Origin: Guillardia theta CCMP2712
Taxonomy: Eukaryota > Protista > Cryptophyta
Length of the DNA stretch: 64,000 bases
Direction of reading: 5' to 3'
Assembly: GCF_000315625.1 (NCBI RefSeq)
Contig: NW_005434619.1
Coordinates: forward strand, 398,991 to 462,990
Numbering within the stretch: position 1 is the first letter of the stretch; each line of letters opens with the position of its first letter. Below the pieces are notes generated by a model. It did not search any database. It was given only the letters and a program-made list of their open reading frames with translations, and was not told the DNA's origin. Positions 27,741 through 33,716 of the stretch are shown here, piece after piece. The position numbers and the translations under genes were made by a program.

Positions 27741-30700
27741 ATGGGAAGCGGTATGCTGAAGCATGCAGACAAAGTGAAATCGAAGAGAGGAGAGAAGGAG
27801 CCGGAGGATTCGACGCTGCACACGAGGAAGGTGAGGAAACTTCACCACGACGATCAGCCCAGTGGCCAGGAGGAGAGCATGGAGGAGGAGACCGACGAGC
27901 TCCTGAACAGAGACGGGATTGAGCAGGAGGAGCAGAAGGGAGACCAGGGCAAGGTGGAGCACAAGGAGCGAGAGTTCTGGATTGTTGGAGATCCCCAGTC
28001 TAGCGAATTCGGGAAGCCGTTCCTGGACGAGCGGCTGATCCGAGCAGGAGTCCGACGGGGCCCCTACTGCCTGGTGACTCGCGAGGATGAGACGACCCTC
28101 CTCCTCCACAGGGCCCCTTCGGTGGCAGACTTTCACTCCCACTACCTCGAGAAGGCGAAGCCGCAGATCGCGGCGATGGAGGCGGAGGCGAGGAAGAAGC
28201 TCGCTCTCCTGGGGGACTCCCGCACCTCAGAGAGGAGGGCGGAGCTCGGGCATTGGGACATCATCGCTATGCGCCCTGCCTTCGTTCCTCGTCGGGTGAT
28301 CTACGGATTTGTCATCTTCCTACTCATCATCGGGACGGGAATCATGCTGTACAGGGACGAGCCTCCCTCCCTCCTCCTCCCCGTCCTCGTCACCTGCCTC
28401 TACCCGATCGCGATCATGGTCGCGTCTCGCATCATGATGGAGAGGATTCAGCCAGCGGAGAAGTACGTGTTCGAGTTTCTCCTGGTCTTCGACCTCTACC
28501 AGACCATCTCCTCCTCCTTCATCTTCATCCTCGTCCTCCTCGAGTCCAACAGGCTGGGAATGCTGCGACATCCATGGGGCAACCGGGCGGAGGTTTCCTC
28601 CCCCACCTTGCGCTGTCTGATCCAGCTGCACTACTACAACCGTATCCTCGAGCTCCTCGACACGATCTTCCGCATCTCCCAGAAGAAGTTCCGCACCTAC
28701 GGGGCCCTTCACTTCTACCTGCGCCTCGTCAACGTCTGGTCCTGGTTTGCTGCAGCTCGAGTGGGAGGAGGAGACGCGTTCTTCATCACCGCCCTGGACT
28801 CTGCTGTGGTCGCCATCAGATTCGTAGTCTTCACACTCTCCCTCCTCCGTCTCAACTGGAACATCCGCATCGACTTCGGCATGCATGCGCCGAAGTTACA
28901 CTTGTTCAGGAAGGAGCATCTGTACCACCTGCAGGTTTACGAGTTCGCCGTCCTCCTCCTCCATGCCCTGCTGGCGCTATGGTGGAGGAGCATGCCGGCC
29001 GGCCTGATGGTGATGCAGATCTTTGTGATGCTGCAGGGGCTCTTCATCTTCACGGACTTCTACTTCTCACGCGACGCTGAGAAGAGGCTGTGGAAGAGGA
29101 GGTACACCGAGTCTCGCCTCATGATCAGCTTCGACTCCTCGGCATGGCTCTTCCTCTACCACTTTGGAGTCGCCATGTGGTTCGAGGACAACATCGACAA
29201 GGACCCGAAGCTCATCGGCTACAGCGGCAGCAGCGGAGGGTCGCTGGTTGCCGGCACACTCGCCTCAGGCATCGACGCCCGAGCCCTCTCAACCTGGGTC
29301 ATCTCCAACTCGTTCCCGGTGGCTGGCAGGAACCCCTTCCGCCTCCTCTCCCAGTGCGAGCAGGCGCTGGACATCTTCCTGCCCAAGGACGCACACCTCA
29401 AGAGTACCGAGGTTCTCCGCGTCCTTCTCACCAAAGTCTCAAGCAAGCCTCCCTTCCTCATGGGAGAGGTAGTTAGCACCTTCCACACTTGGGGGGAGCT
29501 CTTTGCCAGCCTTCGTGCCTCCTGCCACATCCCCCTCGTCTGCCTCCTCCCGTATCCTGTCCCCGGGCACGGCTGGTACTACGACGGGCTCGTGTGGGCG
29601 TCGCTCTTCGTGCCGTGGAGGACGTTCAGTGAGTCGGACACGGTGATCAAAGTCAGGTAACACCTCCCACCATCTGCTCCTGCTCCTGCTCCTGCTCCAT
29701 GCTTCTCCTTCTCCTTCTCCTTCTTGCTGGTTCCCCTCATCAACTTGCCGTTCTGCTCCTCCGCTTTGTTCCCTCCATAACTTCCTTTTGTCATCGTCAG
29801 CCTCCTTTCATCCTCCTACTCCTCATGTTCGTCTTCTTCGACTTCTCCCTCCTTGTTCGTTTTCTTGCTGTACTTGTTGTCTTCTCTTGTCTGTCGTTCT
29901 TGTCTTCTCCCTCCTCCGCTCTTGTCGCCTTGGCATTGAATGGATGAGGCAGCGCGTTTGGAGCTCCGGGAGCTGATCTGAAGCCCAGCGTTCGGATTCC
30001 GTTTTGGTGGTGAGAAGAGGGGAGGAGAGGAGGAGACGGAGGAGGAGGCAAACATGGAGGAAGCAAGAGTTTAGAGACCAGGACGAGGACGAGGACGAGG
30101 GGTACACGAGGAAGAGGTCGGGCTTGAGAGAGAGACTCGAGAGGGAGGGAGGAGGATACGCAGGAAGAGACGCAAGGATCTTGTGCGCTGATGGGGGCGA
30201 GCAGGGCGATTTTCCCTCCCTCCATGGAGGCTCTACATGGCCTTGTCATGCTGGGATATCACGACACGCAAAGTGAGATGATAGCTTTGACAGGCTGCTT
30301 GTCGTGTTTGACAAGCTGACGAGTTTTTCTCAGACTACTTCAAGCAGCCCGGCTGCTCTTCGAAGAGCCTCCTTCTCCTCCGACAGCGTGCGAAGGAGAG
30401 GCCGCTAGAGTCCAGACTAGACAAGGTGAGGGGAGGAGGAAAACCAAGAAAGGAAGAGGCAGAGGGGGATCTGAACGAGTTGGCTGGGAAGTTTTGGCAA
30501 GGGAGGGAAGCAGGAAGGCAGGAGGCCTGAGCATGAGGGGGAAAGGTAGGAGAGGTAGTGTAGGCATGATGAGGATGGAGGAGAAGGGAGGGAGGAAGAA
30601 GCGTTGACGCTGGAAACAGGGAGCAAAGCAGAGCATTCGAAATCTAGAGGAGCTGGTGAGGCGAACATGGACGCGTGTTTTCTACTTCTCTGTCTTCCTC

Positions 30701-30763
30701 TTCGTCCTCCTCGTCTTTGTCTGCTTCTCTTTATTCATTGTCCCATACATGAACAGTCTATGA
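27741..30763 (+). CDS. ELO/GNS1-SUR4 elongase-like domain fused to a patatin-like phospholipase, with C-terminal TM anchor
   Basis: ELLDTIFRISQKK..ALHFYLR and LFIFTDFY (ELO); ISFDSSAWLFLYHFGV, GSSGG, RASCHIP, YYDG (patatin), all in one 639-aa exon; later exons give VSAFGAPGADLKP..PP..GYHD and a hydrophobic tail ending TGA at 30763. Confidence 0.85.
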
Positions 30764-30947: not shown

Positions 30948-33716
30948 CTACATCTCTGCCATGAGCTCGTGTACCCTTTGATTCATTGGCACGCGCTTCC
31001 TCTTCAGCTCCTCGTAGATGCTGCCGCTCTTCATCAGTGCACCTCCTCTGCCACTTCCCTCCTCCCCCTCCTCCCCAATCTGCTACTTCCTGCCCTAACC
31101 TCCCTCTTCACCCCAGGCTACTCCTCCTCCACTCCCTCTACCCCCTCCTCCCCTGCTCCTTTCCCGCATTTCCCCCTTTTGCTTTCTCTCATCTCCCTTT
31201 CCCCTGCCCCACCTCTACCACTGCCGTGTTGTCCTCTACCTCCGTACATACTTCTTTCTTCTTCCTCTCGTCTCCTTCCTCCATGGTCCCTCAAGACTCT
31301 CCCTCCCCTCCCTCCCCTACTCCCCTCCCTCCCTCCTTCACCGTCTCAAAGTCTCCTCGTCTTCCATCTCCTCCTCAATCAGCAGCTGGAGCAGCCTGCC
31401 GTCCACCAGCCCAGCCTGCCGTTCTCTCCTCATCTCGTGCGAGGAGGACGAAACTAAGTCTCACCTGCTCGGCCTCCTCCAGCAGTGCTCTGGCCCTCCC
31501 CATCCCAGCATCCCCCCTCCTCCCGTGCAGCTGTAACATCCTCCCGTAGGTCTGCGAGCTCCGGCAGGCCGCAGGGATAGCGTCAAACATTTCCTCCGCT
31601 GACTCGACTGCTTCCTCCGAGCCATCGGCACACGCGCACGCGAGGAAGGAGTTGCAGAGGCCTGAGGAATGTGAGATGAGAGGGGAGAGGGGAGAGGGGA
31701 GAGGGGAGAGGGGAGAGGGGAGAGGGGAGAGGGAGAGGGAGAGGGAGAGGGAGAGGGAGAGGGAGAGGGAGAGGGAGAGGAGAGGAGGAGGAGGAGGTAA
31801 GTAAACGAAGGGGAGGAAGGATGAAAGAGAGGGGAGGAGCGAGAAACAGGTAGGAAACGAGAGAAGAGGAGGGAAAGGAGAGAGAATGGTTGTCAAAGTG
31901 GAGGGAGGCGGTGGTGGATCAGAAGGAGGAGGAGGAGGAGGAGGAGGAGGAGGAGGGGACGGTGGCAGGAGCGGGGGTGGAAGGGGAGGGCGCGGGGAAG
32001 GAGCAGGAGCAGGACCTGTGTCGATCTGTAGAACAGCATCTCTCTTCATAGTCTTGATGATAAGATCTGCGCTCTTTATCGTTGCTCTTTTCTTCAGTAT
32101 GCTCTGAAGAGGCGGCGAGACACAGCGAAAGGAGGAGGGGAGGAGGAGAGGAAGGGAGCAGGGAGGAAAGGAGGAGGGGAGCAGGGAGGAAAGGAGGACG
32201 GAAGAAGGGAGGAAAGGAGGACGGGAGGAGGGGAGGAGGAAGTTCAAACGAGTCAGCATGTAGGAGAAAGGGAGGAGATCGACCTGCTCGCAGATGCTCA
32301 TCAGGATGGAGAAGGAGATCAAGTCGGGTTTCACGATATCGCACCCCGCCAGCTTCTCCCTCCTCCCCTTGTGCTCGCAAAGGTGGTGGAATATTTCCGT
32401 CCTGCGAACGGTTGTCACAGCAGGGAGCAGCTGTTCGTTCCTCACCCTTCATGGAGCGGGTCGAGGAGGGATCGGGAGCTGTGCAGACAAGTCTTGAGCA
32501 GCGCGTTCAGCGTGAACCTGTCGGGGGAGAGCTTGCTGTCGACCAGCAGCTCTACGATCCCCCAGGCCCTTGCCAGCCCTCCCTGGCTGTACCTCGCTGA
32601 GTTCGCGCAGCACTCGAGGAGGGTGTTGAACGTGACGAGGTTGGGGGCGATGCCGTCAGCCGCCATCCTCTCAAGCACTCGCTCCCCGTCCTCCAGCTCC
32701 GCCTTCTTGTGAGATGCGCACTTGGCGATCAGGTCCAGCAGCGTGTTGTACACATGGAGGGAGGGGGCTAGTCCCTGGCTCCTCATCATCTCTACGATGC
32801 GCTCGCCGTCTCTTGGGGATGCCAACGATCTCTCAGCGCACTTGACGCACAGCTGCATGTAGGAGGTGAACGTGTACTGGTCGGGAGAGACTCCGTTGGC
32901 AAGCATGAGCTGAACAACGCTGAACCCTGTCATGGGCGTCACCGGCGCTCCTGATCTTCTTCCCTGCTTCATCATCATCTTCGTGCAGACGTCGAGCAGC
33001 GTGTTGAACGTGTACGCGTCTGGCTGCACCCCGTCCTCCTTCATGCTGCTGATCACCTGGCTCCCGTGAGAGAGTATCGCTTCCCCCCTCCATGCCGCCT
33101 GCGCTACTGTGTTCATGAGCGCGTTGTAGAGGATGGCATCCGGCTGAAGCCCGCACTCCTTGCACTTGCTCAGCACCTCATACGCGTCATCTGCTGTCGC
33201 TCTCCCCCTCCTTATGTCTTGTCCGCACACGCTCATGAAGGTCGTGAAGAACTTGAGGGTGAAGTTGTAGTTCTCCGATCTCATTGTCTCAAACAACTGT
33301 TCAAACAAGAATAACTCTTCCACTCCGTCCTCCTCCTCCTCCTCCTCCTCCTCCTCCATCATCACCACCACCTCCTCCTCCGCCTCCTCCTCCGCCTCTT
33401 TCCACCTCTAACCCCCCCCCCCCCCTCCCCTCCCTGCGTCTCCCCTCTTATCACTCCTGGCCTTCACCTGGTTGGCTTCAAGGAGGGAACCGCCTCTCCC
33501 CAACAAATCCTTAATGGACAGCTCTTTCTCCGGAGGCATGGCAGCTTCCTTCTTGGCATGGAGGACGACAGGAAAGCAGCGGCAACAAGCCTTCCTTGGT
33601 TTCTGCGATAGAAACATGCCATGACGGGAGGATAGCGGTCTGTGTGCAACCCAGCAGGCATCAGGGAGGACGAGGGAGAGGAGCAGCAAGACTTTGAGGA
33701 AAGGGCTTCCTCTCAT
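30948..33716 (-). CDS. Pentatricopeptide-repeat protein with signal peptide plus transit-like presequence (probably plastid)
   Basis: Repeated PDAILYNALM, PDAYTFNTLL, PDQYTFTSYM, PSLHVYNTLL, PNLVTFNTLL, PDRFTLNALL, PDLISFSILM; N-terminus MRGSPFLKVLLLLSLVLPDAC-W. Confidence 0.9.

Follow-up and report, generated by a model that had tools for sequence, protein, structure and literature searches.

A protist protein family joining a His-less elongase-like barrel to a patatin-like lipase domain, described from Guillardia theta

Introduction

In the elongase ELOVL7, seven residues are essential (K124, D130, H150, H151, N177, H181 and Q211): H150 is the nucleophile and forms an acyl-imidazole intermediate, H151 and D130 tune H150, and N177 and H181 stabilize the oxyanion (bioRxiv 10.1101/2020.11.11.378570). 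In the patatin-type lipase ATGL, the nucleophile is Ser47, and substrate recruitment requires Phe17 (PMC8506970). Long-chain acyl-coenzyme A (acyl-CoA) inhibits ATGL (PMC3988850) and regulates the pseudo-hydrolase ABHD5, a co-activator of ATGL (PMC10014278). The endoplasmic reticulum (ER) protein TMEM120A, or TACAN, has the ELOVL fold and binds CoA (PMC8376247), and it activates the acyltransferase GPAT4 (PMC13365615). Here we describe a gene of the cryptophyte Guillardia theta CCMP2712. It lies in a stretch of 64,000 nucleotides (contig NW_005434619.1, positions 398,991 to 462,990 of the forward strand), hereafter the window, and it encodes an elongase-type (ELO) barrel followed by a patatin-like domain.

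A first-pass annotation made from the DNA letters had described the protein as a disabled elongase fused to a patatin phospholipase, and had proposed that the elongase part became an acyl-CoA/lipid-binding membrane module that would feed or regulate a lipase or transacylase. Literature searches on ELO–patatin fusions, on Guillardia, and on dinoflagellate elongases and patatins retrieved no description of this architecture, nor any report of a naturally His-less ELO clade under selection.

Loss of the condensing residues in the ELO half

Motif positions were verified by translating the window coordinates (Table 1). Residues are numbered as in the transcript-derived protein P0001; numbers in the coding sequence (CDS) starting at 27741 are higher by four, Ser494 being Ser498 of the full CDS. 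In a profile alignment, ELOVL7 residues K124/D130/H150/H151/N177/H181/Q211 correspond to R297/D303/L323/R324/D349/V353/Q394 of the Guillardia protein. The HxxHH box reads HFYLR and the lysine of the KxxExxDT box is arginine, both as first annotated. The TxxQxxQ box reads YHLQVYE, with Q211 unchanged, Tyr for T208 and Glu for Q214. Because Leu, Arg and Val replace the H150/H151/H181 triad, the barrel should be unable to perform elongase condensation.

The loss is shared by the relatives. When 1.84 billion cluster representatives were searched exhaustively with a profile, 152 matches fell below E 1e-30; once all retrieved proteins had been aligned to the family profile, 59 representatives proved to carry both domains. 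No HxxHH box occurs among the 59 fused representatives: His is found in none of them at the H150 column (L34, Q8, M4, V4, I3 and others) or at the H151 column (R50, K7, Q2), and in one of 59 at the H181 column. The K124 column of the fused family reads R30, K8, H6 and Q6. The profile search also recovered 18 stand-alone ELOs, each of which keeps H150, H151 and H181. In a quick maximum-likelihood tree, a single branch separates the His-less fused sequences from the HxxHH ELOs, with a Shimodaira–Hasegawa-like approximate likelihood ratio test value (SH-aLRT) of 98; the root of this tree was not established. The one fused sequence with His at the H181 position (P0110, 807 aa) also has an ordinary patatin loop (...CCGFLG), and may represent an early-branching or intermediate form.

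Of all ELO matches in the Guillardia genome, that of the fused gene is the most divergent (63 bits, where others reach up to 181). The six other ELO loci (L001–L005 and L007, on contigs C11, C179, C33, C16 and C25) all have an intact HxxHH box (LHEYHH; LHVYHH twice more; LHCYHH; LHWFHH), so fatty acid elongation in Guillardia would not depend on the fused gene. That the ELO half is a dead elongase, and that the loss is conserved across the fused family, is thus well supported by sequence comparison, and the original claim of a dead elongase holds beyond this one gene.

A patatin half with a conserved catalytic dyad

The patatin half retains the nucleophile Ser in GSSGG and the Asp in YYDGL, as first described. 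Across 42 aligned full-length family members, G492, S494, G496, D611 and G612 are invariant. The residue after the catalytic Asp-Gly, in the position of the DG[A/G] motif, is Leu, Met or Phe in the family and not Gly or Ala. After the Asp come FPPS and GYxD motifs, which, as in PNPLA2 and PNPLA3, are typical of the PNPLA1–5 group.

The Gly-rich oxyanion loop of canonical form (GGxR/K or GxGxxG) is not present, its place being taken by SFDSSAWLF. The first-pass annotation had read this loop correctly, and had hinted that it was degenerate. That hint does not stand: D461 and W465 of the loop are invariant among the 42 aligned members, and the family consensus, SFDSSGWLY, also occurs in patatins that have no barrel. 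Stand-alone patatins of 260–470 aa with SFDS(S/C)GW(L/M)Y include P0097, P0101, P0105, P0108, P0113, P0117, P0154, P0156, P0165 and P0182, among others. Many (e.g. P0097, P0108, P0154 and P0182) have their starting Met only 4–25 residues ahead of this loop. More remote stand-alone patatin matches have ordinary SF(D/S)G(G/C)GW loops. Since stand-alone patatins carry the same loop, it is the signature of a wider PNPLA-like subfamily, independent of the barrel; its two invariant residues, together with its consensus in stand-alone proteins, therefore indicate that this signature is under selection. We accordingly rejected a decaying loop as an explanation.

The DSS(G/A)W loop aligns with the ATGL loop that bears Phe17, and the spacing of Trp465, Ser494 and Asp611 (29 and 117 residues) is close to that of F17, S47 and D166 in ATGL (30 and 119). 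Taken together, the conserved residues suggest that the patatin half is alive, its Ser-Asp dyad most likely being the only catalytic center of the protein.

Domain architecture and topology

The layout was derived from an AlphaFold2 model, built from an alignment of 42 sequences, and from hydropathy analysis. The model has a mean predicted local distance difference test score (pLDDT) of 83.4 and a predicted template modeling score (pTM) of 0.75.

An ELO match was found both by hidden Markov model (HMM) and by structure. Pfam ELO (PF01151) matches residues 213–443 of the open reading frame (ORF) at E 2.9e-16 with 60.2 bits (cut-off 27). The modeled barrel (199–439) superposes on ELOVL7 (6y7f_A) with Z 21.2 and a root-mean-square deviation of 3.2 over 225 residues, and the family profile finds ELOVL7 in the Protein Data Bank (PDB) at E 5e-17. 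More remote fold matches of the model are TMEM120A (Z 13.8, within a TMEM120 range of Z 12–14) and ceramide synthase (Z 10.9).

The patatin domain (model 450–698) matches PlpD (5fya, Z 18.9), CapV (Z 18.4) and CapE (Z 18.1), followed by potato patatin (1oxw, Z 16.6) and iPLA2-beta (Z 16.2). Within the PDB it was identified by fold comparison only, as a sequence-only search with this part returned nothing significant (best E ~1). An NCBIfam scan gave no match. Pfam Patatin (PF01734) is matched by 15 of 17 relatives (best E 8e-8), and this, together with the fold matches to patatin-type lipases, secures the assignment.

Only about 20 residues link the seventh transmembrane (TM) helix to the first patatin strand, and a C-terminal TM helix spans model residues 730–748. 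The ELOVL7 chain begins in the lumen and ends in the cytosol (bioRxiv 10.1101/2020.11.11.378570). Given the extra helix TM0 ahead of the barrel, the fusion protein would by inference have its N-terminal region and its patatin domain alike facing the cytosol.

Ahead of TM0 lies a conserved N-terminal module with a helix of ~30 residues and invariant W, D, FG and LV, modeled at a moderate pLDDT of 75. It has no match in Pfam or the ESM Atlas and no fold match in the PDB (best Z 3.6).

Gene structure and transcripts

The uninterrupted ORF at 27741–29660 (+), of 639 codons, makes up the first of five exons in a transcribed gene. The full CDS runs from 27741 to 30763 (+), the latter being the stop of exon 5; the exons total 759 codons including the stop, giving a protein of 758 aa. 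All four introns are of the GT-AG kind. The end of the patatin fold, ~85 residues with the FPPS and GYHD motifs, is encoded by exons 2–5, as is the C-terminal membrane anchor. The earlier statement that both domains share one exon therefore holds for the ELO barrel and for the patatin core through the catalytic Asp, and does not hold for the end of the patatin fold.

A word search found the transcript-derived protein P0001 (754 aa), which is 100% identical and clusters with an MMETSP protein of 758 aa (P0028). The translation of every exon is present in P0028; for this check each exon was compared singly with transcript-derived database proteins. The NCBI/UniRef protein P0027 (639 aa, ending ...VIKVR) corresponds to exon 1 with read-through into intron 1. 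Because exon 1 runs on into the intron in this model, and P0001 and P0028 show four more exons, we regard P0027 as truncated, lacking the last ~85 patatin-fold residues and the C-terminal anchor.

There is next to no chance that the fusion is an artefact of gene modeling or assembly that merges two adjoining genes, as the earlier annotation had also held. Both domains lie within one uninterrupted ORF, the independent transcript assemblies P0001 and P0028 cross the junction, and the architecture is common to ~59 representatives from several phyla. In two relatives (L025 and L024) the entire fusion protein is encoded by a single intron-free ORF on a genomic contig. We therefore ruled this explanation out.

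The fusion gene is single-copy in Guillardia, and no second DSS-type patatin was found in the Guillardia genome. The Hanusia phi protein falls in the same 90% cluster as the Guillardia protein.

Table 1. Exons, domains and motifs of the ELO–patatin fusion gene, in positions of the window
Feature	Position	Strand	Remarks
Exon 1	27741..29656	+	638 codons and 2 bases; N-terminal region, extra TM helix, ELO-like barrel, patatin core up to the catalytic Asp; then donor AG/GTAACA
Exon 2	29953..30009	+	S-AFGAPGADLKPSVRIPFW; AG acceptor, GTGAGA donor
Exon 3	30205..30272	+	AIFPPSMEALHGLVMLGYHDTQ; holds the patatin C-terminal FPPS and GYxD motifs
Exon 4	30334..30425	+	NYFKQPGC...ESRLDK
Exon 5	30620..30763	+	C-terminal TM anchor at 30686-30742; TGA stop
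Charged N-terminal tail, ~74 residues (model 1-70)	27741..27962	+	Predicted disordered (pLDDT <50), not conserved
N-terminal module, small beta-sheet and long helix (model 71-181)	27963..28295	+	Conserved; cryptophyte and hemistasiid diplonemid members only
Extra TM helix TM0 ahead of the ELO barrel (model 182-200)	28296..28352	+	Hydropathy
ELO-like seven-TM barrel (model ~199-439)	28377..29069	+	Pfam ELO; ELOVL7 fold
RILELLDT, KxxExxDT box	28641..28664	+	Lys to Arg; Glu, Asp (= ELOVL7 D130) and Thr kept
HFYLR, HxxHH remnant	28710..28724	+	H147 kept; nucleophile H150 to Leu; H151 to Arg
DSAVVAIRFVVF, replaces NxxxHxxMYxYY	28797..28832	+	N177 to Asp, H181 to Val, Y187/Y188 to Val/Phe
Patatin/PNPLA-like domain (model 450-698)	29100..30398	+	Pfam, relatives, fold; broken by introns 1-3
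SFDSSAWLF, Gly-rich loop variant	29127..29153	+	Family consensus SFDSSGWLY; Ala for Gly in Guillardia
GSSGG, nucleophile elbow	29226..29240	+	Ser invariant
YYDGL, catalytic Asp-Gly	29577..29591	+	Asp-Gly invariant

Residues retained in the barrel

We compared the residues that hold CoA in ELOVL7, namely N72, D130, R137, H147, Y187, Y188, K204, T208 and Q211. Most are retained in the 59 fused representatives: N72 (N32/D14), D130 (D52), R137 (R38/Q13), H147 (H56), Y187 (Y28), Y188 (Y37/F18), K204 (K37/R9) and Q211 (Q38). Of the 59, 57 keep the tunnel tryptophan W156 and 56 keep W158. Nearly all fused-barrel positions with at least 75% conservation are conserved in ordinary ELOs too, apart from the family-specific Arg in the H151 column and Glu241, which is invariant. 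Selective loss of the triad together with retention of the ligand pocket is thus the pattern expected for a ligand-binding pseudoenzyme, and we infer that the barrel has most likely become a pseudoenzyme still able to bind a ligand, be it CoA, an acyl-CoA-like molecule or a lipid. The first-pass idea of a barrel that binds acyl-CoA or lipid is in this way indirectly supported.

The barrel could instead be a mere membrane anchor or scaffold, free of ligand, that tethers a PNPLA-type lipase to the ER or to contacts between ER and lipid droplets. We consider this unlikely. Anchoring plainly belongs to the design, as two further TM helices are present, and both the loss of catalytic residues and the disappearance of several CoA contacts from cryptophyte members fit a scaffold. 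Yet a single TM helix would suffice as an anchor, whereas tunnel and CoA residues (H147, D130, K204, Q211, Y188, W156, W158 and GGD) are kept across dinoflagellates, euglenozoans and cryptophytes, and 50 of the 59 representatives have a buried Arg fixed where ELOVL7 has H151.

It is distinctly improbable that the barrel has gained a new catalysis of its own, such as a thioesterase-like reaction or another acyl transfer, through H320, R324, D303 and E241. These four residues are nearly invariant in the fused family, and R324 is a family-specific gain. However, H320 and D303 are conserved in ordinary ELOs as well, where they bind CoA or stabilize the fold; the His150 column offers no replacement nucleophile, being Leu, Gln, Met, Val or Ile; and three to five of the seven essential ELOVL residues are changed.

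Proposed mechanism

On balance, and with modest confidence, we favor a membrane-integral PNPLA-type acyl hydrolase or transacylase whose non-condensing ELO module, probably a ligand-binding pseudoenzyme, tunes or supplies the lipase in cis. The chain would run from a cytosolic N-terminal region through TM0, the seven-TM ELO barrel and the ~20-residue linker to the PNPLA/ATGL-like patatin domain and the C-terminal TM anchor. The barrel would bind CoA, acyl-CoA or another lipid without condensing it. The patatin Ser-Asp dyad would act as an acyl hydrolase or transacylase on lipids at the cytosolic face of the ER membrane, and occupancy of the barrel by its ligand may tune or supply this activity within the same chain. 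The protein would then be a single-chain counterpart of the pseudoenzyme-plus-enzyme pairs ABHD5–ATGL and TMEM120A–GPAT4.

Several observations weigh against this proposal. Pfam Patatin (PF01734) matches residues 464–617 at E 2.9e-5 with 24.8 bits, slightly below the cut-off of 27.7, and reaches 29.5 bits when adjacent in-frame pieces are summed. Hydrolytic competence is putative, because the Gly-rich loop in Guillardia is without both glycines (Ser and Ala in their place). In the cryptophyte branch several of the CoA contacts have drifted (N72 to D247, R137 to Q310, Y187 to V359 and T208 to Y391); CoA binding is therefore less certain in the Guillardia protein than in dinoflagellate members, and the ligand of its barrel may differ. 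Finally, the ELOVL7 thioester lies mid-membrane, at the bottom of a 35 Å tunnel (bioRxiv 10.1101/2020.11.11.378570), which makes direct hand-over from a barrel thioester to the cytosolic patatin Ser unlikely.

If the low Patatin score and the non-canonical loop, with both its glycines gone in Guillardia, were taken at face value, both halves might be inert and the protein would have a structural or regulatory role in the membrane. This is very improbable, given that neither the Ser and Asp of the dyad nor the glycines beside them vary among 42 divergent sequences. Pseudo-lipases typically lose precisely these residues.

The depth of the thioester also bears on a composite acyl-CoA-dependent acyltransferase, in which the barrel would hold the acyl-CoA and the patatin Ser would take over from the nucleophile His150. 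Such an enzyme would be in keeping with the retained CoA-contact residues, with a linker of only ~20 residues in a model of whole-chain pTM 0.75, and with the transacylase activity possible for PNPLA enzymes (PMC8506970). Nevertheless we regard it as improbable: a Ser in a soluble domain cannot reach the thioester unless the ligand pose is very different, the PNPLA transacylation known so far is acyl-CoA-independent (PMC8506970), and stand-alone patatins have the same DSSGW loop without any barrel.

Within our preferred scheme of a lipase tuned or supplied in cis, the His-less barrel may possibly serve as a membrane sensor, of acyl-CoA or, through the buried Arg324, of malonyl-CoA or free fatty acid, that allosterically gates the ATGL-type lipase or transacylase of the same chain. 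We put this forward tentatively. Were it true, the protein would be an independently evolved, single-chain equivalent of the animal ABHD5–ATGL and TMEM120A–GPAT4 systems, widespread in marine protists, and would tie lipolysis or acyl remodeling directly to the ER acyl-CoA pool.

Distribution and relatives

Named cryptophyte members are Guillardia and Hanusia phi, and dinoflagellate members include Polarella glacialis, Gymnodinium smaydae and Yihiella yeosuensis. The family also occurs in Euglena gracilis, the syndinian Amoebophrya and the chlorarachniophyte Amorphochlora amoebiformis, as well as in two hemistasiid diplonemids, Artemidia motanka (P0012) and the EukProt entry 'Hpha' (P0014), the latter probably Hemistasia phaeocysticola. 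This spread suggests that the fusion family is probably a conserved, uncharacterized protist lipid-handling enzyme.

In a quick tree of the barrel, the two diplonemid sequences nest in the cryptophyte clade beside Guillardia, and they share the cryptophyte-type N-terminal domain. Their placement may reflect either gene transfer from cryptophytes to diplonemids or prey contamination of the transcriptomes. The Euglena gracilis copy (P0064) is much more distant than these two.

Some members have elaborated the architecture. In the dinoflagellate members P0017, P0019, P0022 and P0023, the patatin domain is preceded by a tandem pair of His-less ELO barrels. Proteins of 1,400–1,600 aa were also seen (P0072 from Amoebophrya, P0074 and P0092), and some very long proteins, the Amoebophrya one among them, match the profile in four to six separate stretches, suggesting repeated modules.

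Genomic neighborhood

Neighboring ORFs gave no functional link to the fusion gene. The upstream neighbor has only a weak DUF2512 match. Downstream, on the opposite strand, lies a pentatricopeptide-repeat (PPR) ORF (32445–33371, −; PPR_3 E 5e-31), adjoined by a long low-complexity ORF rich in Pro, Ser and Leu (31375–32445, −) that may be part of the PPR gene.

Significance

If the barrel still binds acyl-CoA or lipid, the family would be a clear example from nature of an elongase fold put to new use as a ligand-binding pseudoenzyme, and would provide a built-in model for the control of PNPLA lipases by acyl-CoA-responsive partners. As it occurs in lipid-rich, ecologically important protists, including dinoflagellates, cryptophytes, euglenids, parasitic Syndiniales and chlorarachniophytes, it could bear on storage-lipid turnover and on the remodeling of polyunsaturated fatty acids, with relevance to marine food webs and algal oil biotechnology. 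Two consequences concern annotation: the truncated public gene model of Guillardia calls for correction, and protist elongase counts based on the ELO HMM alone would be too high, since they include dead copies.

Comparison with known systems

Common to the Guillardia protein and ELOVL7 are the seven-TM inverted barrel and much of the CoA pocket, together with a KxxExxDT-like box, the His that opens the His box, W156/W158, GG(D), K204 and Q211. The Guillardia protein differs in having Leu/Arg/Val for His150/His151/His181 and Asp for N177, in its extra N-terminal TM helix and in the fused lipase. Judged by these residues, it is a protein of elongase fold and ancestry without the defining elongase chemistry.

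With ATGL and the other PNPLA1–5 proteins it has in common the patatin alpha/beta/alpha fold (Z 16–19), the GxSxG Ser, the DG Asp, an ATGL-like spacing and an aromatic residue at the Phe17 position. However, its loop is DSS(G/A)W instead of GxGxxG and its catalytic motif DGL instead of DGG, and its patatin domain is tethered between the barrel and a C-terminal TM anchor, unlike the soluble, lipid-droplet-associated PNPLA proteins.

TMEM120A (PDB 7n7p and 7f3t) resembles it as an ELOVL-like, non-elongase barrel linked to another lipid enzyme (Z 13.8 to the model). TMEM120A, though, has a WVFHH motif, a six-TM barrel and an N-terminal coiled coil, and acts in trans, whereas the fusion protein is nearer to true ELOs (Z 21 vs 14), is recognized as an ELO by its HMM match, has no HH pair and bears its partner enzyme in cis.

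ABHD5 (CGI-58), acting with ATGL or PNPLA1, offers what may be a functional analogy, a disabled homologue of a lipid enzyme that controls a PNPLA-type lipase or transacylase (PMC10014278, PMC3988850, PMC12465037). ABHD5 has the alpha/beta hydrolase fold and forms its pair from two separate proteins, so that any likeness would be functional only. Because three of four elongase sequence features fail in it, and because its patatin loop is non-canonical, we assign the Guillardia protein to a family of pseudo-ELO–PNPLA fusions and not to the functional elongases.

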